A stretch of 64,000 bases of DNA from Macrostomum hystrix (taxonomy: Eukaryota > Animalia > Platyhelminthes), in contig CATNEN010000007.1 of assembly GCA_950097015.1 (NCBI GenBank), positions 1,674,001-1,738,000 of the forward strand. Reading direction: 5' to 3'. The stretch's first letter is position 1. The number at the start of each line of letters is the position of its first letter. This document shows positions 31,117-62,821 of the stretch, in pieces. The position numbers and the translations under genes were made by a program. Under the pieces are notes generated by a model that searched no databases, was not told the DNA's origin, and was given only the letters and a program-made list of their open reading frames with translations.

Positions 31117-34100
31117 TCACAGGTACAGGGTCTGCAGCAGGAAGTGGTCCTGCTTTACCACGCCGAAGTCTTCCTTCGTTTTCGGCATGGCTCTGAATGT
31201 CTCGAAGGCGGTCTTGAGCCTGATGGACAGCAAGATGAAGTCCTCGAAGCAGACCCGGCCGTGCTCCGGGTCCATGTAGCGCATGGCGATGGACTCAAAC
31301 ACTTTGTTGCTGAGGTTGTAGCCGGCTACGCGAAGGGCGTCGCGCAGCTCGAACGAGTCAAAATATCCGTTGCCATCAGCGTCGTACTCCTTGAAGATGG
31401 TCTTCAACAGGCGAATCTCGTTCCACAGGTGCTTGAACTCGTCGAACTCCATGAAGCCAGACATGTTGGCGTCAACCAGGGCTAGCATGCTGCGGCAGGC
31501 CTCCAAGCTGAAGCCTTGGAATTCTTTGATCTCGCGGCCGAATGAGCGGTTGAGAATCTGCTGCAGCTGCTTGGCGTGAATCTTGGCTGCGCTGCCTGGA
31601 GGGGTTAAACGTGTTCGATCTTTTAGGTGACATCACTTCCTTCAGATTGAAAAGACTTTTATTGAAGACTTTAGTTTCAGGGTCATTTTCGTTCTTTAGT
31701 TTTGACCCGAGCACTCGTAGCACATTATGTTGAAAAATTACCAAGGGTTAAAGTGCTTATTTTTTGTTTCGTTGATTAGATACAGAGTGATAGGTTTCAC
31801 AATTTACCATTAAAATATAAATGCGACTTCTGGTAAAAATTATAGAGAATGTAAGTAAATAGAATATTGCAATTCGTTAGGACTAATGAAACTTTTTGGT
31901 GTTTCGTAAGCATTGGATAGTAAGTATTGTACTCATGCTGACGGTTTTAGTACTCTAGCTCATGCTTCCATCAGAGCGTATGGTAGCATACATATGGATC
32001 GATTTTATGAACACGTTTCACTACGAGCTAGTATGTATAGCACTGGCAGCGGGTGTATACTCGTATAGTTTCTACATTGTTACATTGCAGCGCTCATACT
32101 TCAAATCTTATAGTGTCGCTAATAAGAAAGTACTTACGCTGAAGACCTAGAAAATATTTTCGAAAATAATTTTTCCTTAGTTTTGTTTTCTTAATTATTA
32201 TACGTTTGGAAAATAGTATTTACTCACGTGAATATATTGTGCTCACCTGCATACTCCATGAAAGCCTTCTTTAGCGGCTCCTCATTCTCCATCACCGTTT
32301 TGGCATGCTTGCGACCGAAAACACCGTCCACAACGTTGTCCATGGTGTTGGTTGTGTCCAGCACGCCCGACTCGTTCGGCTTCTCTGAGAAGATGCGCAG
32401 TATGAACTCGGCCTCTTCGTTCGGGTTGAACGTCGACGGAACGATTACATAATGACCCGGGGGCAGCTTGTGACGTCCGCAGACCTCGCGTTGGTTGACA
32501 AACGACGGGGACTTGTCGCTTTGGCGCGTGAAGCGGAAGTATTTCTGATCAAGCAGGCCGACATTCGCGTCCTTGATGGAGTAGATCGCATAGCCGATTG
32601 TGAGATAGTCGGCACCTTTGAGAATCTTGCGAATGTCCTTCTGCATGAGGCCAACAATAATCGTGCCCATGTTCTCGTCGTCGTTCTCGTCCGGGTCGAC
32701 GATCTCCACGCGGAACTGTGGATTGGTGTGAAAGCTGTCGATATTGTTGCGACAGCCGCCGGCGCTGACGTTCCGCTTCCACTGGCCGGTCTCGAGGCAC
32801 ATCTCCCAGCGACGCTTCTTGGCCGCTTCGCCTTTGACACTGGTGGACATGGACTCGGGACCTAAGTGACAGATCTCCAGCTTGTTGAACTGGCTAGAAA
32901 AGTCCCTATAGGACATCCAGAACTCGCCGTCGTCTTTCATTTCCATATTCAGACGGTCCTTCTCGCCGCGGCTAACGTCGCTCCACTTGGGGCTGCGATC
33001 GCTCCAGTCGCCCCTCCACTCGCACTCATTGCCCCATGGATTGCGAACGCGCACCAAGGACTCCTCCATGCCGTTGTTGAGCTTCACCGTACACACATCC
33101 GTGATGGAGTAAGCGTGTCCGGTAATCAAACCGTTGGTCAGTCGACCCTCCACCTGCTCACTCTCGATAGCGCAGCCCATCAAGGAGCTGCTCGCGTTGG
33201 CCTGGACCATGATGTTGTACAGATTCGGCGGCGCCTTCCTGAGGTCAAAGGTCTCGCACAGGCCGCCAGTGAAATCCACCATGGCCTCAGCCTGGTTTCC
33301 GCCACTTAAAGCCTCGTAGCTGCCGTTGAGTTTGGCGTAGGCCTTCTCGAGCAGAGCAGACCAGAACTCGTTCCGGTCCTCGCTATGCATGAAGCAGAGC
33401 TTGCCGTTTCGGGTTGGCAGGCGGTCGTCAATCTAGAAGTGTTCCATTGGAATTCGATGATTTCGTGTTTCGAGGGTCGTGCCAAAATTCCTCAATTCCT
33501 TAACGAAGTTCAAGAGACTAACTTGCTTTAAACATGAAATAGTTTTTTGTTTTTACCTCAACATCATTCCACTGGCCGAACTGCCACAGACGGAAGCGAA
33601 ACATCCCACAATAGTTTCCGCCAAAGTTCTGGTCAGGCACAACCACCTGATCGAACAGCTGCTTGTGCAGAGACAGCGAGGCGATCGCTGCCAGCAGCCA
33701 GCAGTCTCCTAGCTCGCCCTGCTTCACATCGAATCGACTCACTCCGTCGCTAATGAACTGCGGGTCTGAGCAGATTTCTCTTGGACGCTTCCATTCGAAC
33801 TTAGCGTACGATCGTGACGGGTAGACGCTGCGATTGTCGGCCGGGAAGTCGGGATCTTCAAAGAGCTGGCCGGAGAGCTTCTGCTCTTCGCGCTTGGCAT
33901 TGAAGTCGCCTTTGGGTCGATCAGAGCCAGCCTGGTGGTAGATGGTCCGTGGCGGTCCCGGATCCTTCGGCGCGCGAGGCACAACGACATCTCCGCTGAT
34001 CACTGTCGGTTGACTGCGGCGGTCCAAATAGTCAAAGATGTTTCTACCGCCGGAGCCGCCGTTCAATTGGTCGGAGTGGAAGCTGTAGCCCTTGTAGTAT

Positions 34101-44200: not shown

Positions 44201-47200
44201 TACAGATAAGGGTGTGATACAGAGAAGGGTGTGACAGAGAAGGGTGTGACAGAGAAGGGTGTGATACAGAGAAGGGTGTGACAGAGAGGGGTGTGATACA
44301 GAGAAGGGTGTGATACAGAGAAGGGTGTGATACAGAGAAGGGTGTGACAGAGAGGGGTGTGATACAGAGAAGGGTGTGACAGAGAAGGGTGTGATACAAA
44401 GGGGTGTGATACAGAGAAGGGTGTGATACAGAGAAGGTTGTGACAGAGCGGTGTGAGAAAAGGGTGTGAAGAGAAGGGTGCAATATAGAGAGGGTGAGAT
44501 GAAGAGGGTGTGACGGGCAAGGTGATTAAGTTTTGAAGATTGCTTAGATAATTAGCTGGTTTTATATTAGATTTTAGCTGTAAATGAAATTATACTGCAA
44601 GGCTATTTTGAGAAGACTTATGGAACTGAAGAGAGCAGTTAATCGGTAATGAAAAGCAATTTAGCAGACAAAAGTGAGACATTTTTTTCATTTATCTCGC
44701 TATAGCTGCCTATAAATTTTTCAAAGTTACAGCATGAGTTTCTAATACTATAGCTGATGCAGAATCCGAACTTGCAACTTCCATGCCCCCTCACTCAGTA
44801 ATAGTCAGTATAAACTGTTCGGCCATGCTTCTAATGCTGCTGTCGGTTTGGTGCGCCTTCGATCAGTCTGGTCGTGTTTGGCTTAGACTGCGGCCAGCGA
44901 AGCCTGCTGCTGCTGCTGCTGCAACTGCGAATTCGTTGCATATCGTCGATTCAACAGATCACACTGCTGTTGCTATGCGCCGGATATCATCTTTTGCTAG
45001 GCGCAACAGTTGGAAACAGAGGTGAGAATTTTTTCGACCGTTTAATAAACGATTGGCCTCGGGCTAAGACTCCACCCAGAGCTTCGTGACCAACAGTTCG
45101 GGAGTTAGAATCTTGGCCCAATGGAAAACTATTGTTATTCTTGCTAAAAGTACGAGTATTAATTGGCTCACTGCAGAGATGCCCTGGTGCAGTATGAGCA
45201 CATCTGGGACCAGCGCTTTCGCCGCCTATTCTGCTGTCTCAACGGAGACGATAGGAATGCTCAGGCCACGTTTCGCGACATTGCCAGGCTATTCTCGGAG
45301 TTCTTCCGCGATCTAGACGTGGTGCCGTCGGATGTGCTGGCCGGCCTAGTCCTGCTTAGGCGGTATCAGAAGGAGAGGGCCCGCATGGCGCTCAAGGTTA
45401 GTGAGCCGCTGTCGCACTTTTGTGAGTTGATTTTGAGCACTTTGCCTGCATCTCACCCTGTATCTTCCTGCATCTCACTCGGTATCTCCCTACATCTCAC
45501 CCAATATCTCCCTACATCTCACCTGGTATCACCCTGCATCTCACCCTGTATATCCCTGCATCTCACTAGGTATCTCCCTACATCTCACCCAATATCTCCC
45601 TGCATCTCACTCAGTATCTCCCTGCATCTCACTAGGTATCTCCCTACATCTCACCCTGTATCTCCCTGCATCTCACTAGGTATCTCCCTATATCTCACCC
45701 AATATCTCCCTGCATCTCACTCAGTATCTCCCTGCATCTCACCTGGTATCACCCTGCATCTCACCCTGTATCTCCCTGCATCTCACTAGGTATCTCCCTA
45801 CATCTCACCCAATATCTCCCTGCATCTCACTCAGTATCTCCCTGCATCTCATCTGGTATCACCCTGCATCTCACCCTGTATCTCCCTGCATCTCACTAGG
45901 TATCTCCCTACATCTCACCCAATATCTCCCTGCATCTCACTCAGTATCTCCCTACATCTCACCCAATATCTCCCTGAATCTCACCCGGTATCTCCTGCAT
46001 CTCACTAGGTATCTCCCTGCATCTCACCCGGTGTCGCCCTGCATCTCACTCTGTATCTCCCCGCATCTCACCCGGTGTCGCCCTGCATCTCACCCGGTGT
46101 CACCCTGCATCTCACTCAATATCTCCCTGCATCTCACCCGGTATCTCCCTGTATCTAACCCTAGTATCTCCCACCACTGCAGTGTTTGCCAATCACATTT
46201 TCCAGAGCAGATCAGCCGACATTCAGGCCTTCATGTCCGGCCGTCCGGTGCTGCCCAGCACGCGATTTCTTTACGCTGACAGCCAGGCAGCTGCCGATCT
46301 GCTTCCGGAGCTCGTGTTTGGAATGAAGCTGGCTCTGGCAGCTTACGGTTGCCCAATGCTGGCCTACACAACTAACTGCTGCTGCCTGCTCTGCCACCTC
46401 AGGTCCTGCGCCAAAGGAGGCAGGTGAGTGCAGATTTCTTCAATGTGATGAGGAGTTCGGTGACTCACGCCCAGAGTTCCACTCCCAGCATTCCACTATT
46501 CTGTGAGTCACTCCCACCATTCCACTATTCTGTGAGTCACTCCCACCATTCCACTATTCTGTGAGTCACTCCCAGCATTCCACTATTCTGTGAGTCACTC
46601 CCACCATTCCACTATTCTGTGAGTCACTCCCAGCATTCCACTATTCTGTGAGTCACTCCCACCATTCCACTATTCTGTGAGTCACTCCCACCATTCCACT
46701 ATTCTGTGAGTCACTCCCACCATTCCACTATTCTGTGAGTCACTCCCAGCATTCCACTATTCTGTGAGTCACTCCCACCATTCCACTATTCTGTGAGTCA
46801 CTCCCAGCATTCCACTATTCTGTGAGTCACTCCCACCATTCCACTATTCTGTGAGTCACTCCCACCATTCCACTATTCTGTGAGTCACTCCCAGCATTCC
46901 ACTATTCTGTGAGTCACTCCCACCATTCCACTATTCTGTGAGTCACTCCCAGCATTCCACTATTCTGTGAGTCACTCCCACCATTCCACTATTCTGTGAG
47001 TCACTCCCAGCATTCCACTATTCTGTGAGTCACTCCTTTATGGTTTTTGTATGAATCCTAAAAGACAAGCTATCTTATTTCAGTCCAATCATCGGCGGCC
47101 GGTGCTGTTGCTCCACCTTCTGTCGTGGCGACCGTGGCGCCACCGCCCGGGCCAGTGTGGAAGCCCTGCTTCGACGCAGCGGCATCGGACCGGACGATTT

Positions 47201-48212
47201 TCAGCTGCTCCACGTCAGCCAGGAGCTGCTCGAAGCCGCTGACTGCAACCCGTTCTACATCGGTCTAGATAAGCGACGCGGGCGTCTCGTGTTGGCCATT
47301 CGGGGCACCCTGTCCCTGCAGGACGTCCTCACTGACCTGCGCGCCGATGCGGAACAGATCTGGCCGGAAGCGGAATCAGATGCCAATCTCAGCGCGAGGT
47401 GCCGCGATTCTTCTACTAAAGGATCGAAAGCTGTGAATTTTGCGTTGGAGAGTGTTTCTGTACACCCCCGACCAGGATCAGCGCATTCGAAAGCGAAGCC
47501 GGCTAGCGGCGCCTGTTCCGGTCACAGCGGCATTGTTCGCGCAGCTGAACGAGTCCATCAGCTGCTGCTCAGTTCCGGTTGGCTGGCTGAATCCCTGCCA
47601 CTGCTCATCACCGGCCATAGTCTGGGCGCCGGCATTGCCGTTGTTCTCGGCCTGAGGCTGCGTTCCTCGCACGTCACAGACGCTCCCAACGTGCTGGCAT
47701 TCAGTCCGCCAGGCGGTCTTCTGTGCTCCGCAGGTGCCGAGGCCGCTAGTGGTTTCGTCACCTCCGTTGTGATTGGCAAGGACGCAGTCTGCCGCTTAGG
47801 ACTGGCTCAGTTAGAAGGCATGCGGGCGGCCATGACGTCATTGTTGAACAGAGCCAGGAAGCCAAAGTGGCGCATCATCTGCTGCAATGGTGACGGCGGC
47901 CAGCCAATCGAAGAGGAAGAAATGACTGACAGCTTTCTCAGGCAGGATTGGCACGCCGCCGCGGGCGCGGGCAATGACCGGCCGCCCCTCTACCTGCCGG
48001 GCAAGATTCTCCACCTGGTTCGATCGGCGCGGCCTAGCAAGGCTGCTCCAGTCCTCTGGCAGGCTGTCTGGGCTGATCGGGCCGATTTCGACGAACTTCT
48101 GGTGTCGCCGTCGATGCTGCGAGATCACCTTCCCGACTGCGTGTTGGAAGCTCTGGAACAGATGGCCGAACAGGTGCGGGCCGGTGACAGACTAGTGCAG
48201 ATTGATGTTTGA
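41295..48212 (+). CDS. DAGLA: sn1-specific diacylglycerol lipase alpha-like
   Basis: Exons 41295-41389, 42362-42645, 43090-43203, 44799-45021, 45177-45396, 46206-46423 and 47084-48212 give 760 aa with all phases consistent. Motifs MPGLVLFRRRWAIGSDD, four TM segments, FFRDLDVVPSDVLAGLVLL, AIRGTLSLQDVLTDL, GHSLGAG, IGKD, DHLPD. Confidence 0.93.
41790..42092 (-). mobile_element. SINE family 2 copy
   Basis: The minus strand begins GGTGGCAGAGCGGTTAA (A-box), has a degenerate B-box, the shared hairpin body and an AT-rich tail. Confidence 0.8.
42706..42990 (-). mobile_element. SINE family 2 copy
   Basis: B-box GAGTTCGATTCC on the minus strand; same body as the 41.8-kb copy. Confidence 0.8.
43525..44515. 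repeat. 15/17-bp minisatellite (GGGTGTGA(TA)CAGAGAA) in DAGLA intron 3
   Basis: Tandem units of two interleaved lengths. Confidence 0.96.
45445..46165. repeat. About 21-bp pyrimidine-rich minisatellite (TATCTCCCTGCATCTCAC...) in DAGLA intron 5
   Basis: Tandem periodicity. Confidence 0.93.
46478..47037. repeat. 29-bp minisatellite (CTGTGAGTCACTCCCAnCATTCCACTATT) in DAGLA intron 6
   Basis: 19 near-identical copies. Confidence 0.97.
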
Positions 48213-48845: not shown

Positions 48846-49755
48846 TGTGTGAGTTAGAGGCATTTAGGGTCTTATCCAGAATGTGCAACTACATCAATTT
48901 AAGTGCAACAATCAATGCACTTAAATTGAATTTTCCCTTATTAAAAAAGACAATCTTTTATCTAGGTATTGCAGAGTCAGAATCAGAACATTTTCCCTCT
49001 TTCATTAGCTGTTTCATTAGTCTGTGATTTTTCTGTCTACTGAGCTTAATTTTTACACTTTTCCAACGTGTCTCTACCTTTCTAGGTTTCTAACCATTTA
49101 TTGGCTTTGTTGAATCAGGCTGCATATCATTTTACCAGTTCTCTCCTACCTAATTGGACCTCGTATCATAGCTCGTTCATTGTGCTTTTTGTTATTTTTT
49201 GTCAGTAATAAACTATCAGATTTCTGACATAAAATGGATTCAAGTAAACAACCTTCTTTAATCGTCAAACTTCTTTTAACTAATTAGCTGACGAGGATTC
49301 TTTCGCATAGTTGCTCTTTCAAAATCAAAGCTGTTTGACGTCAGACAGTGTAGTTGATGATGAAATTAGTTTTAGTGCAAGCGAGTTTCATGACAAGCTT
49401 TGTCACAAGGGCCAGTTAAGCTAGAATAGTCGTGTTACTTCTAGTTTATTTCAAACTTTCTTGCTCTTGTCAAGCCATTCGGAATAGAACAAAACATTGC
49501 ACCGGCCTTGAGCAGTGCTCTCTCTCGTGCTACCGTGGGCGCACTTTTAATAAGCCTCTCTTTCTCTCTTTAATTTTTGTATTCTCTCTGCTTGCGTGCC
49601 CATAATAGTTTAGAGCTTCTAGAGAATATATAAGCGTCAAACCGGTGCATACGCGTAGGACGCGTTTGTAGGGCCTGTCTTCTCGACTTACCAATATTAG
49701 TGACTTAATAATAGCAAAAGTTAGGTTTTCATTTCATTTTTCCCTATTTAACAAT

Positions 49756-51733
49756 ATGAGCAGCAACTCGTGGAGTGAGCGGTTCTACCAGAGGTGAGTG
49801 CGAAATTTCATACAGGACCTAAACTTTTGCCACACTGAACTTTTAAAGCCTCAAGTTATTCATGCACTTAATTCTACACTGACAACACTCACAATGTCAC
49901 AACACTCACAATGTCACAACACTGACAATGTCACAACACTGACAACTGTCACAACACTGACAACTGTCACAACACTGACAACTGTCACAACACTGACAAC
50001 TGTCACAGCACTGACAACTGTCACAACACTGACAACTGTCACAGCACTGACAACTGTCACGACACTGACAACTGTCACAACACTGACAACTGTAGAATTT
50101 GTAGAATTTGATGTAACTGATATAGTATATGTTTATTATGTATCGAGAGAAAGATGTGGCATAGTGTCAGGCCACCTGCCCGCCTGTTGCAGCCTGTCTA
50201 ACCGTCAGCAGAACTCGTCGCCGTCACTGCGGCAGCAGCAGCAGCAGCAGCTGTTTCAAATTCTGCTCAGCTCGCAGATCCGTCAGAGGTGGCAGCTGTT
50301 GCAGAGGATTCTGCATTCCGAGCCGCTGTACGGCTTCGAGGCTCCGCTGCCGACTAAGAGTCGAGTCCTGATCGCCTGGCCGTGTCAGCGGGGTCGCCTG
50401 ACTCCCAGCGGTGCTCGAGTCGCTCTCCTGGCTAACTTTGTTCAGCTAATTAATAGGGCCTTTGGTAATCACGTTGAGGATCTTGTCGCTTCAGTTGCGC
50501 CTCCGCGAGATAATGTTGATAAGGATGAGGATAAGCGAAACTCCCTGATTCTGACTGGCGACATCGAGCGCCTCGGACTGCGGCACTGCCGGCTGGAGAG
50601 TGAGGAGTTCTACGCCAAGGAGTCCCACCGGCTGGCCAGGGTGGGTGAATGGGAGGATGGCAGAGTGAATAGCAGAATGAATGTGATGGCATGGCAGAGT
50701 GAATAGCAGAATGAATGTGATGGCATGGCAGAGTGAATAGCAGAATGAATGTGATGGCATGGCAGAGTGAATAGCAGAATGAATGTGATGGCATGGCAGA
50801 GTGAATAGCAGAATGAATGTGATGGCATGGCAGAGTGAATAGCAGAATGAATGTGATGGCATGGCAGAGTGAATAGCAGAATGAATGTGATGGCATGGCA
50901 GAGTGAATAGCAGAATGAATGTGATGGCATGGCAGAATGAATGTGATGGCGTGGTAGAATGTCGCCAACAGTCGCCGGGTGCTCATCCGCAGGTTCTGAG
51001 CAGTCTTGGGCTCGCAGGCGGCGAGGCCTGGTCCAACAGCCGGCTGGGCGACCTGCTGGCGGCTCTGGCCCGCGCGGAGCGGACCTCCTATCACCGGCTG
51101 CACTGGGTGGCTGGTCACGACTCCGCTGACCGTATCGAAGCTTTAGCAGCCGGTCTGAGCCGTCTCGGTTATCGCCGTCTCGCCGAACCGTCGCCATGGC
51201 CGTTGCACGTTAGCGTCGGTCCGGTTTCTTTGGCAACGGGCTCGCCCAGCCGCCTAGAAGAGTGGCTGCTGTGCGGCGAGGCTGAGTCTACCGACTGGGA
51301 GGCGCGTGACAATGTCCTGCTGCAGCTGCTGGCTCCGCCTAGGGCCATGCCGGCTACAATTGGTGTCACGCACTGGCGACACACTGGCGATGCCCTGACA
51401 GCTGCCAGACTGCGCCGTACACGCCAACGATTGCTTGTTGAAAGTTCGCCTTTCAAAGCCGGCGATACCGACTTTGATGAAGATCCGAGCAGTTGGACTC
51501 GGCAGGATTCGGCCCTGGCTCAGCACCTGGCTGACTTCCCCCAAGCCGCCATGGCCACATACCTGTCCTATGAACCACGTCCATTGCTCAACCACCTGGC
51601 TAAGCTGTCTCAGCTGGTTGATGAAGCGGACATGGTAGATGATCTAACCAGGCCGAGCAGTCTATTGGCCAAAGCTGCAGGTCGTGTGTTCGATTCCACT
51701 TGCTCAGTGCTCGGTCTGCTGTCGGGCTGTTGA
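49756..51733 (+). CDS. Degenerate arginyl-tRNA synthetase-like / DALR anticodon-binding-domain protein (RARS2- or DALRD3-related)
   Basis: Exons 49756-49793, 50193-50640 and 50993-51733 give 408 aa in phase. Collinear resemblance to mitochondrial ArgRS segments (ANFVQLINRAFGNHV; LGL..ESEEFYAKES; HLADFPQA..YEPRPLLNHLAKLSQL; AAGRVFDSTCSVLGL), but with no HIGH motif. Confidence 0.7.
49880..50095. repeat. 18-bp minisatellite (CACAACACTGACAACTGT) in intron
   Basis: Tandem copies. Confidence 0.93.
50650..50950. repeat. 34-bp minisatellite (GGCAGAGTGAATAGCAGAATGAATGTGATGGCAT) filling an intron
   Basis: About 8 perfect copies. Confidence 0.96.
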
Positions 51734-51884
51734 TGACTGCACTTTTTTTAGTTGTTTTATAGGCTTGGATGCAAACAGCTATTTGTATATAGAGACAGGA
51801 ACAGGTACACAGACAAGTAGATGATATACATCGAAATAAAATGTAGTCTATCTAATGATAGACAGTGCGTGTAAGTAGACAGGC

Positions 51885-52140
51885 GGTTAGATAGGCAGGC
51901 AGGTAGGTAGATAAGACAGGCAGGTAGGTAGATAAAACAGGCAGGTAGATGGACAGGCAGTTAGGAAGATAGAACAGGTAGGTAGATGGAACAGGCATGT
52001 GGATAGACATGCAGGTAGATAGAGCAGGTAGGTAGATAGACATGCAGGCAGGTAGATAGACATGCAGGCAGGTAGATAGACATGCAGGCAGGTAGATAGA
52101 CATGCAGGCAGGATTGCAGACAGGTAAGTAGATTGACATG
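51885..52140. repeat. Degenerate about 20-bp repeat (GCAGGCAGGTAGATAGACAT)
   Basis: Imperfect tandem copies. Confidence 0.8.
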
Positions 52141-59076: not shown

Positions 59077-60817
59077 ATGGATCCGCTTGGCATGCGACTC
59101 CATGTGGAGATGATGAAGCAGCTAAATGAAAGCAAAGAGAGCTACCCGGAAAATCACAATCCGAACGATGAGCTGGTGGCTGCCCAGTCCAAGCGAAAGT
59201 TGGCTAATCCCGCTAATTGGTTCCGGCGGCCGGCCAGCAATCCCTTGACTTCGAATCAGTTTTTCCCCGCATTCGACCAGCTGCCTATGGATATCGACTA
59301 CGACAGTGACTATTACGATGGGTAAGTTCCTAGTGACCCAGTGTGCTGAGTGAGTGATCCAGTGTGCTTAGTGAGTGACCCAGTGTGCTCAGTGAGTGAC
59401 CCAGTGTGCTCAGTGAGTGACCCAGTGTGCTCAGTGAGTGACGGTGTGCTCAGTGAGTGACCCAGTGTGCTCAGTGAGTGACGGTGTGCTCAGTGAGTGA
59501 CCCAGTGTGCTCAGTGAGTGACGGTGTGCTCAGTGAGTGACCCAGTGTGCTCAGTGATTTACTGACCCAGTGTTCTCAGTGATTAACTGACCCAGTGTGC
59601 TCAGTTAGTGACCCAGTGTGCTCAGTTAGTGACCCAGTGTGCTCAGTGAGTGAACCAGTGTGCTCAGTGAGTGAACCAGTGTGCTCAGTGAGTGACCCAA
59701 TGTGCTCAGTGAGTGAACCAGTGTGCTCAGTGAGTGCTTCAGTCATACACTCAAGTTAAATAGGCATTTTCCCTGCATCATTCAAAAGGAATCACTTTCG
59801 CAAGTTCTGGTTGCTGCTGGCCGAGATTGTAGACGCCTCCCTCACCACCATCAGCTGTTTGCGCAACGAAGTTAAAGCCAAAGACAAGTTGGGTCACGTG
59901 TTTCCCATCTGTTTTTACCCGGATAGTGAAAGTCTCCAGTTTAACTACCGCAGCCTTCGCCAGGGTCGAACCCTGGTACTGTTCTGCCCAACTCAACACG
60001 AGTTTTTGGACGGTCGAACCGGCATGAGAATGGAGCATTTGGAAAGCATGCGGGTATTGCCCATGAACATGGTTGATGTGCAGCGAACAGCCGCGAGGGC
60101 TTTCGTGTGCTCAGTTCACAAGTGAGACCAGGGAATGAGTTTACTCATTCGGTTACGGCTCATTGCACAGTTTACTTTAGTTTACAATTTTGTTAGAGAG
60201 ATTGAGTACAGTTTACTGGAGAGATTGAGTACAGTTTACTGGAGAGATTGAGTACAGTTTACTGTAGATATTGAGTACAGCTTATTAGAGAGTTTGAGTA
60301 CAGTTTATTTAAGATATTGAGTACAGTTTATTTAAGATATTGAGTACAGTTTATTTAAGATATTGAGTACAGTTTATTTAAGATATTGAGTACAGTTTAT
60401 TTAAGATATTGAGTACAGTTTATTTAAGATATTGAGTACAGTTATTTAAGATATTGAGTACAGTTTATTTAAGATATTGAGTACAGTTTATTTAAGATAT
60501 TGAGTACAGTTACAAATAATTCCATTCCTCTTAATAAAATATTGCCCAGATGCTGGAGGTGCAGGTCAGACGAGCAGCAGCGGCGGCAGCAGCAGTCGAA
60601 GCAGCGTCTATTCCGTTGCAGCGGCTGCGGCTACGCCCGCTACTGCGGTCGCGACTGTCAGGCGGCGGACTACCCGCGACACAAAGCCGAATGCGCCAGC
60701 GGCGGTAAAGTTCTGCGGCAGATTGTCCGGCTTGTGTACTTCCGCTATGACACTGCCGTAAGGCAGCAGTTTCGAGACGACATTTACGTTTCACATCCGT
60801 TTGATCTGTTTGTCTGA
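59077..60817 (+). CDS. MYND-type zinc finger protein with an uncharacterised N-terminal domain
   Basis: Exons 59077-59321, 59789-60121 and 60550-60817 give 281 aa in phase. C-terminal CWRC...CSGCGYARYCGRDCQAADYPRHKAEC fits the MYND pattern. Confidence 0.85.
59335..59735. repeat. 21-bp minisatellite (GACCCAGTGTGCTCAGTGAGT) in MYND intron 1
   Basis: Tandem copies with 19-bp variants. Confidence 0.95.
60195..60512. repeat. 23-bp minisatellite (TATTGAGTACAGTTTATTTAAGA) in MYND intron 2
   Basis: Tandem copies. Confidence 0.93.
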
Positions 60818-62250: not shown

Positions 62251-62416
62251 CAATGCTGTTTAGTAAAAAACAATTTTTGTCGACTGCATCACGAAAAAAA
62301 TGTTTTATTTTGAATTTCAGCGCGATCATCTCCTACTACTTACTCATTTGGCTATATAAGTAGCGTTATCAGCATTTACGCGTTTTTTGTACGAAGAGCA
62401 AGAGAAACCTAATAGA

Positions 62417-62821
62417 ATGCGCGGCTGGCGTACCATTCCGGCGTTGAAAGGCTACCGAGTGGCAATGATGTACCCCAAGAAGCCCAGTCCGCGCCTGACC
62501 ATCTCCATGGTGCAGGAGGGCTGCACAAATAGGCCATTCTTTACTATTCAGGCCCGCAATAACCTGCAGGCCGCCAATGAGTCGGGTCTGGAACAGTTGG
62601 GCAGCTGGGATCCTCTGGTCAACACCCACGGCGAACAATTGGTGGGCGTCAATATTGGCCGCCTCATACACTGGATGGCCCACGGTGCCACGCCTTCCCT
62701 GGGTGTGGCCAAACTGTTCGGCCTGGTTGGCGCTCTGCCAGTTCATCCCAGCTCCGAGTTAGAGGCTGTGCGACTGACCAAGACTCTGAGAAGCAAGGCT
62801 AGCGCTGCGCAGGAGGAATAA
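62417..62821 (+). CDS. MRPS16: Mitochondrial ribosomal protein S16 (bS16m)
   Basis: Single exon, 134 aa: LTISMVQEGCTNRPFFTI..EQLGSWDPLVNTHGEQLVGVNIGRLIHWMAHGA..KLFGLVGALPVHP. Confidence 0.93.
   Translation: MRGWRTIPALKGYRVAMMYPKKPSPRLTISMVQEGCTNRPFFTIQARNNLQAANESGLEQLGSWDPLVNTHGEQLVGVNIGRLIHWMAHGATPSLGVAKLFGLVGALPVHPSSELEAVRLTKTLRSKASAAQEE

Follow-up and report, generated by a model that had tools for sequence, protein, structure and literature searches.

The gene described here lies at positions 49756 to 51733 on the + strand of a 64,000-nucleotide (nt) stretch of the Macrostomum hystrix genome (assembly GCA_950097015.1, contig CATNEN010000007.1, positions 1,674,001 to 1,738,000 of the forward strand), which was analysed as a whole and is referred to below as the window. 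Its product is related to arginyl-tRNA synthetase (ArgRS), has degenerate catalytic motifs, and is called the pseudo-enzyme. An original prediction, made from the letters of the window alone, had read the gene as three phase-consistent exons encoding an intact protein of 408 amino acids (aa). These exons, at 49756-49793, 50193-50640 and 50993-51733, join in frame without a stop codon and give the 408 aa as 12 + 1 split codon + 149 + 246. Both introns begin with GT and end with AG. The features of the gene are as follows.

49670..49755, + strand: 5′ untranslated region (UTR), extending at least this far upstream and containing no ATG; the longest transcript contig (run X4) begins at 49670
49756..49793, + strand: exon 1, 38 nt including the ATG; encodes MSSNSWSERFYQ and 2 nt of the split codon
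49794..50192, + strand: intron 1, 399 nt, GT..AG; most of it is made up by 11.9 copies of an 18-nt tandem repeat (49882-50093)
50193..50640, + strand: exon 2, 448 nt; begins with an N-terminal stretch rich in Q and S and continues into the first half of a Rossmann fold that has collapsed
50395..50418, + strand: RLTPSGAR, the HIGH signature in degenerate form (RARS2, the mitochondrial ArgRS, of the same genome has PLHAGHLR)
50434..50475, + strand: NFVQLINRAFGNHV, a near letter-for-letter match to Macrostomum RARS2 (NFVVQINRAFGHEV/RV) and not to other ArgRS
50641..50992, + strand: intron 2, 352 nt, GT..AG, phase 0; nearly all a 34-nt tandem repeat (50646-50942, 8.8 copies)
50993..51733, + strand: exon 3, 741 nt including the TGA (51731-51733); codes for the other half of the Rossmann core, then for the stem-contact region and the helical bundle of the eroded DALR part
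51179..51226, + strand: LAEPSPWPLHVSVGPV, bearing the insertion specific to flatworm RARS2 (LANPSPWPMHV in M. lignano RARS2, NSSLWPLHV in Hymenolepis)
51227..51250, + strand: SLATGSPS, standing in for the GMSTRxG loop, the ArgRS counterpart of KMSKS
51479..51622, + strand: sub-threshold match to Pfam DALR_1 (exon-3 residues 163-210, profile positions 24-72 of 117)
51734..51900, + strand: 3′ UTR, extending at least to 51900, which is reached by contigs of runs X5 and X6

Contigs from four public runs (two studies) match the exons at an identity of at least 99%. They skip precisely 49794-50192 and 50641-50992 and so carry both exon joints, as had been predicted. The runs come without a library record, and three of them comprise 43-48 million letters; they were read as RNA because these are too few letters to assemble a 220-Mb genome and because the introns are lacking. 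The gene is transcribed and correctly spliced. The predicted start codon is the first ATG of the longest contig. Four single-base differences separate the contigs from the assembly, at 50548 (I to V), 51143 (synonymous, L), 51162 (R to H, His being the residue found in Macrostomum lignano) and 51548 (A to T). They are probably alleles, and are too few to inform on selection.

Searches were carried out with the exons of the window protein taken singly and with a natural protein of M. lignano, P0001, as a full-length stand-in. In a word-index search exon 3 matched only M. lignano proteins, the best of which was P0001 (392 aa, N-terminally partial, 52% identical). P0001 runs continuously across the joint of exons 2 and 3, and in the corresponding M. 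lignano locus (L013) an intron occupies the same codon position. An upstream exon of the M. lignano ortholog encodes MSYSWSDRFYQ where the window gene encodes MSSNSWSERFYQ; the N-terminal peptide is conserved. Minisatellites fill nearly all of both window introns (49882-50093 and 50646-50961). The orthologous introns (L013, 5480-5950 and 6487 onward) are filled with minisatellites too, with unrelated units of about 20 nt, so that the intron positions have been kept between the species and their content replaced.

Relationship to ArgRS was assessed with a family profile. Aligned with hhalign to an alignment of eight ArgRS, this profile gave a match of 99.2% probability (E 9.5e-20, 347 columns), spanning the protein from the helix before the first Rossmann strand through the C-terminus. 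An exhaustive HMMER search of 1.84 billion protein representatives recovered this gene from M. lignano in the form of two models, followed by four proteins at E 3e-4 to 1e-3. All four are ArgRS: RARS2 of Mesocestoides, RARS2 of M. lignano, a fungal RARS1 and one unnamed ArgRS. DALRD3 gave no match at E <= 0.001 in this search. Language-model features (ESM Atlas) returned ArgRS clusters only. On these comparisons the protein is a derivative of ArgRS. The nearest feature clusters in the ESM Atlas consist of phage (Uroviricota) proteins of 390-430 aa named 'ArgRS family'. The tRNA-synt_1d model matches just some of these, and phages may thus also have short ArgRS-like proteins.

The original prediction had named the Pfam models tRNA-synt_1d and DALR_1 as a check, and neither scored above its threshold. 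The tRNA-synt_1d model (PF00750) had no match at E <= 10 in exon 2, exon 3 or P0001. The PDB, queried by sequence with each of these two exons and with the family profile, likewise yielded no match at E <= 10, and NCBIfam gave none. DALR_1 (PF05746) scored 16.8 bits with window exon 3 and 19.9 bits with the M. lignano protein, below its gathering cut-off of 22.3, and the match spans just profile positions 21-73 of 117. The relationship to ArgRS is carried by the profile-profile match and by the BLASTP and HMMER matches. The region under DALR_1 is homologous but eroded. The proposed retention of a tRNA-binding module holds only in part: the module is sub-threshold, has lost about 30 + 12 residues and lacks the conserved Q-Y of QYxxAR.

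Structure prediction, also proposed at the outset, was carried out with AlphaFold. Using a 34-row alignment that included ArgRS, a model was obtained with a predicted local distance difference test score (pLDDT) of 81.6 and a predicted template-modelling score (pTM) of 0.85. It consists of five Rossmann strands with helices, followed by a helical bundle. In a Foldseek search of the PDB, 17 ArgRS structures rank first (query template-modelling score, TM, 0.60-0.70), followed by CysRS and MetRS. A shape search of the ESM Atlas returned ArgRS clusters only (TM 0.76-0.84).

The signature and pocket residues considered below have roles established from ArgRS structures. At the Rossmann start, VLIAWPCQRGRLTPSGARVALLANFV aligns with RARS2 of the same genome, and the profile alignment reproduces the HIGH region as the original prediction had drawn it. 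There PLHAGHLR of RARS2 stands opposite RLTPSGAR in the window protein and RLTPQGVR in M. lignano; neither of the two conserved His columns survives, in keeping with the predicted replacement of HIGH by TPSGAR, and the surrounding stretch of RARS2 is replaced by VLIAWPCQRGRLTPSGAR. EEFY, likened earlier to ESFY, does align with the GESxY motif of ArgRS. At the position equivalent to KMSKS, GMSSRR of RARS2 (GMSTRxG in ArgRS) has become SLATGSPS in the window and AMATGTPS in M. lignano, with loss of the conserved T and R columns; the expected want of a basic motif at this position is confirmed. In the arginine/ATP pocket the Asn of SPN is replaced by Arg and the Tyr of SLYxTRD by Trp, the Asp of RD being kept. 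In VVxxxQxxHF the Gln has become Ser (window) or Glu (M. lignano) and the His has become Arg. An 11-residue element of RARS2 is replaced by WVAGHDSADRI in the pseudo-enzyme.

Whole segments are absent as well. These are the GDWG motif with the helical insertion of about 95 residues that follows it, a hairpin of about 30 residues before SLY, about 30 residues before the first helix of the DALR part, and 12 residues in the C-terminal helices. In total, about 140 residues are deleted, the catalytic part accounting for about 84 and the stem-contact/DALR part for about 57. Across 27 canonical ArgRS, 75 alignment columns reach a conservation of 80% or more; 66 of these persist in M. lignano RARS2, 28 in the M. 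lignano pseudo-enzyme and 23 in the window pseudo-enzyme. What is retained is mainly glycines, core hydrophobic residues, the Asp of RD, HVxxGxV, the Arg of QYxxAR and the EP of YEP. Given the established roles of the motifs and their loss, binding of ATP or arginine is not to be expected, and we infer that the protein cannot activate arginine or charge tRNA.

The window's own genome was searched for the canonical enzymes. RARS1 was found on contig C3 and a separate RARS2, which had been proposed as a check, on contig C25 (L011, C25:1235000-1241500, minus strand). Both carry intact HAGH and MSSRR, and a PF00750 scan of the genome detected these two loci only. A search of the same genome with the family profile matched, besides the single copy of the pseudo-enzyme itself, only the RARS2 locus (E 3.8e-7); the RARS1 locus was unmatched. 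Similarly, in BLASTP comparisons P0001 matched M. lignano RARS2 (P0010) at E 1e-19 and fish RARS2 at E 0.04, and a second segment of the match to P0010 has 14 identities in 21 positions (VRVALVANFVLQINRAFGHRV). The strings NFVxQINRAFGHxV, GCGRxH and TYEPxxLVAY are common to Macrostomum RARS2 and the pseudo-enzyme only, and the pseudo-enzyme also carries the insertion typical of flatworm RARS2, in the string form LANPSPWPxHV. P0010 itself is short (521 aa), its catalytic domain beginning about 50 residues in, and has no match to Arg_tRNA_synt_N; the other flatworm, snail and tardigrade RARS2 of the sequence set likewise lack this Pfam match.

A maximum-likelihood tree was calculated under LG+C20+F+G4 with posterior mean site frequencies (PMSF) from 28 rows. 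The two pseudo-enzymes join at 100/100 and are sister to M. lignano RARS2 at 99/95, and the group of Macrostomum RARS2 and pseudo-enzymes falls inside the flatworm RARS2 clade at 100/99. The approximately unbiased (AU) test rejects a clade of the four flatworm RARS2 without the pseudo-enzymes (p 0.031). The shared insertion and strings are independent of the tree model and agree with the tree. Very probably, then, the pseudo-enzyme is a non-catalytic RARS2 paralog duplicated in the Macrostomum lineage. Of the two origins offered by the original prediction, this independent, lineage-specific dead RARS2 duplicate is the one favoured by hhalign, BLASTP, the tree, the AU test, the shared strings and the own-genome profile search. 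The duplication would have taken place after the split from the parasitic flatworms and before that of the window species and M. lignano. It would have been followed by loss of HIGH, GDWG, the Tyr/Gln/His residues of the arginine pocket, the MSTR loop and about 140 residues of insertions, leaving a stripped five-stranded Rossmann core and a shortened helical anticodon-binding bundle.

RARS2 has introns after P0010 residues 126, 261 and 400 in both species. The sites of the second and third align inside pseudo-enzyme exon 3, which is uninterrupted, and the first falls in a deleted segment. Intron 1 of the pseudo-enzyme lies in the new N-terminal extension. Intron 2, shared with the M. lignano ortholog and absent from RARS2, falls within a single RARS2 exon, exactly at the missing hairpin. 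Because two alignable RARS2 introns are absent and the gene has its own introns at new positions, the pseudo-enzyme may have arisen as a retrocopy. Such a copy would later have gained two introns, one perhaps from coding sequence turned into intron. Alternatively, a duplicate may have lost the parental introns and gained new ones.

Rates of nonsynonymous (dN) and synonymous (dS) change and their ratio (omega), proposed earlier as a further check, were calculated between the window species and M. lignano using the NG86, LWL85 and YN00 estimators. For exon 2 of the pseudo-enzyme, dN was 0.36-0.38, dS 1.2-1.5 and omega 0.24-0.33. For exon 3 the values were 0.38-0.41, about 1.15-1.18 and 0.33-0.35, respectively, so that omega lies between 0.24 and 0.35 overall. 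RARS2 gave dN 0.19-0.21, dS 1.1-1.5 and omega 0.12-0.18. Bootstrap 95% intervals of omega were 0.11-0.39 (exon 2) and 0.22-0.46 (exon 3), no replicate exceeding 0.54. At the protein level the pseudo-enzyme has changed about 1.9 times faster than its parent (dN). These estimates indicate that the pseudo-enzyme is clearly constrained, by purifying selection.

The surroundings of the gene are shared between the two species. The order Lipase_3, pseudo-enzyme, zf-MYND, ribosomal protein S16 is common to both, and the three neighbours stand in the same order and orientation as on M. lignano contig NIVC01003114.1. In the window they lie as follows.

47130-48212, + strand: class 3 lipase gene, upstream neighbour
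59119-60808, + strand: zf-MYND protein gene, downstream neighbour
62387-62653, + strand: ribosomal protein S16 gene, downstream neighbour

Elsewhere in the window, an open frame at 32224-33390 (- strand) has strong matches to Peptidase_C2 (calpain protease) and Calpain_III and is an ordinary calpain exon.

No orthologs beyond M. lignano were detected in the exhaustive HMMER search, and as far as these searches see, the pseudo-enzyme is restricted to Macrostomum. A 689-aa M. lignano protein named 'JmjC' (P0004) was considered as a further paralog and rejected: it is the same M. lignano gene in a model that is frameshifted and fused. The UniRef names of the M. lignano copies P0002, P0003 and P0004 ('Photolyase/cryptochrome', 'Selenoprotein O' and 'JmjC domain-containing') stem from such frameshifted or fused models and are uninformative on function. 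Public databases currently call the protein a 'hypothetical protein' or mis-name it in this way, and a literature search for the M. lignano gene identifier Mlig005828 found no paper.

Taken together, the best overall explanation is a pseudoenzyme derived from RARS2, with an inferred role as a binding scaffold, to which we assign a probability of roughly three in four. A number of observations weigh against it. The anticodon-binding (DALR) region is eroded and below the Pfam cut-off and the C-terminus is shortened, and window exon 3, the second half of the protein, is acidic (isoelectric point 5.75). The stem branch of the pseudo-enzymes in the tree is very long (2.76), and an unusual Ala/Arg/Leu-rich composition common to both Macrostomum proteins could attract them to each other there. 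The p value of the AU test is just 0.031, for a group named after the tree was seen, and the tree was calculated without any DALRD3 sequence. The idea of a retrocopy is supported by two absent introns only. From a three-row, family-only alignment AlphaFold gave a poor model (pLDDT 37), and the confident model is an aid to mapping and no independent proof, because its alignment is mostly ArgRS. Finally, dS is near saturation; this would inflate omega, not deflate it.

Within this explanation, the pseudo-enzyme would act as a binding scaffold for an RNA resembling tRNA-Arg, or for a protein partner brought to such an RNA, as DALRD3 does. By analogy with that protein, binding of a tRNA-like RNA, or service as an adaptor for one, is the likeliest single mechanism, proposed here tentatively. 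Recognition of the tRNA-Arg anticodon cannot be assumed, because the DALR region is eroded, about 30 residues are deleted, the Q-Y pair is lost and the C-terminus is shortened. A more specific and rather doubtful version is that Macrostomum reinvented the solution embodied by DALRD3: a dead copy of mitochondrial ArgRS, probably a retrocopy, would hand arginine tRNAs or other RNA to a modification enzyme or machine. If true, this would be convergent evolution of a tRNA-targeting subunit derived from an aminoacyl-tRNA synthetase (aaRS), in two distant animal lineages and from different parent genes.

Among the competing readings, the one that survives best, and which is still unlikely, is that the protein is a partner or regulator of its parent enzyme, or of another mitochondrial machine, and not a tRNA adaptor. 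The insect protein SLIMP offers a precedent, as an essential protein that is itself a dead paralog of a mitochondrial aaRS (PMC9437257, PMC10570016). The parent of the pseudo-enzyme is a mitochondrial enzyme, and the best-conserved blocks belong to the core of the fold, not to known tRNA-contact elements. Against this, ArgRS is a monomeric class I enzyme and provides no ancestral dimer interface for reuse, and the conserved N-terminal peptide, which is partly acidic, appears unlike a typical cleavable presequence.

That the gene is a decaying, functionless duplicate, a transcribed pseudogene yet to acquire a stop codon, is improbable. The massive loss of conserved residues and segments would suit such a relic, as would the dN 1.9 times that of RARS2 and the nonsynonymous nature of three of the four transcript polymorphisms. 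A relic is nevertheless hard to reconcile with a frame of 408 codons that is open in two species at dS > 1, with omega at 0.24-0.35 and bootstrap upper limits below 0.5, with the conservation of the start peptide, both intron positions and synteny, and with a transcript that is spliced and expressed in several samples.

Very improbable, too, is the other origin offered by the original prediction, a very divergent ortholog of vertebrate DALRD3 and thus of an old, animal-wide adaptor for 3-methylcytidine at position 32 (m3C32) of tRNA-Arg. The two proteins share a general design, derived from ArgRS, without catalytic motifs and with DALR-like helices at the C-terminus. In addition, a chordate DALRD3 cluster stood at rank 3 of the feature search when ArgRS clusters were excluded, with a score of 0.88, below the lead threshold of 0.9. 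The pseudo-enzyme nests inside flatworm RARS2, however, far nearer to RARS2 of Macrostomum than to that of fish; the exhaustive profile search gave ArgRS and no DALRD3 at E <= 0.001, no ortholog was detected outside Macrostomum, and DALRD3 is reported in vertebrates only (PMC7237682). Orthology with DALRD3 is accordingly the disfavoured alternative, and an independent origin is indicated, indirectly, by the searches and by a tree of ArgRS and pseudo-enzyme rows.

A still active, highly atypical ArgRS, dedicated for example to an unusual mitochondrial tRNA, can be dismissed for practical purposes, since the retained Rossmann strands, Asp of RD, HVxxGxV and Arg of QYxxAR stand against replacement or deletion, in both species, of both HIGH His residues, the SPN Asn, GDWG, the pocket Tyr, Gln and His and the whole MSTR loop, and against a canonical RARS2 with all motifs in the same genome.

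Comparison with known systems begins with RARS2 itself (P0010 and the C25 locus), the probable direct parent. Parent and pseudo-enzyme align collinearly for about 350 columns, in each the Rossmann core leads into a helical anticodon-binding bundle, and they have NFVxQINRAFGHxV, LANPSPWPxHV and TYEPxxLVAY in common. Unlike RARS2, the pseudo-enzyme has no HIGH, GDWG, MSTR loop or arginine-pocket residues, and it has a new N-terminal exon and peptide and other intron positions. The parent is thus still recognisable: one can identify the donor gene, list the deleted segments and measure how fast the sequence changed once catalysis was lost. As M. lignano is a laboratory model with RNA interference and transgenesis, function is directly testable.

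The basis of the functional analogy is DALRD3. This protein, reported from vertebrates only, has a DALR domain of ArgRS type and directs METTL2 to tRNA-Arg-CCU and tRNA-Arg-UCU for formation of m3C32 (Lentini et al. 2020, PMC7237682). The same authors speculate that DALRD3 descends from a duplicated synthetase whose catalytic activity was lost (PMC7237682). Both proteins are related to ArgRS, lack the synthetase motifs and have a C-terminal region of DALR type. In contrast to DALRD3, the pseudo-enzyme appears to have originated independently, inside flatworm RARS2, and has just about 408 aa. DALRD3 is defined by its DALR domain, whereas the DALR_1 match of the pseudo-enzyme is below the Pfam threshold. 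Conversely, the pseudo-enzyme keeps a recognisable, collapsed Rossmann half, and the N-terminal part of DALRD3 is described as having no recognisable motif. Pfam has a DALRD3-specific family for that N-terminal domain, DALR_N (PF26758). DALRD3 is the only ArgRS-derived example in the literature checked: a search for inactive aaRS paralogs found nothing on ArgRS, and a review of aaRS duplications has no ArgRS-derived entry.

The closest evolutionary analogy is provided by SLIMP, a dead paralog of mitochondrial SerRS that pairs with SerRS2 and binds the LON protease (PMC9437257, PMC10570016). Like SLIMP, the pseudo-enzyme is a duplicated mitochondrial aaRS, confined to one lineage, in which the active site has been ablated and which selection maintains. 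They differ in that the ancestor of SLIMP is a dimeric class II enzyme and SLIMP itself forms a heterodimer with its paralog, whereas ArgRS is a class I monomer. Intact, expressed, under purifying selection and stripped of its catalytic motifs, the protein has the features of aaRS-like pseudoenzymes; it is a new, independently evolved ArgRS-derived member of a kind already known. Non-catalytic aaRS relatives such as DALRD3, SLIMP, HisZ and the HisRS-like domain of GCN2 show how enzymes of translation are recycled into regulators and adaptors.

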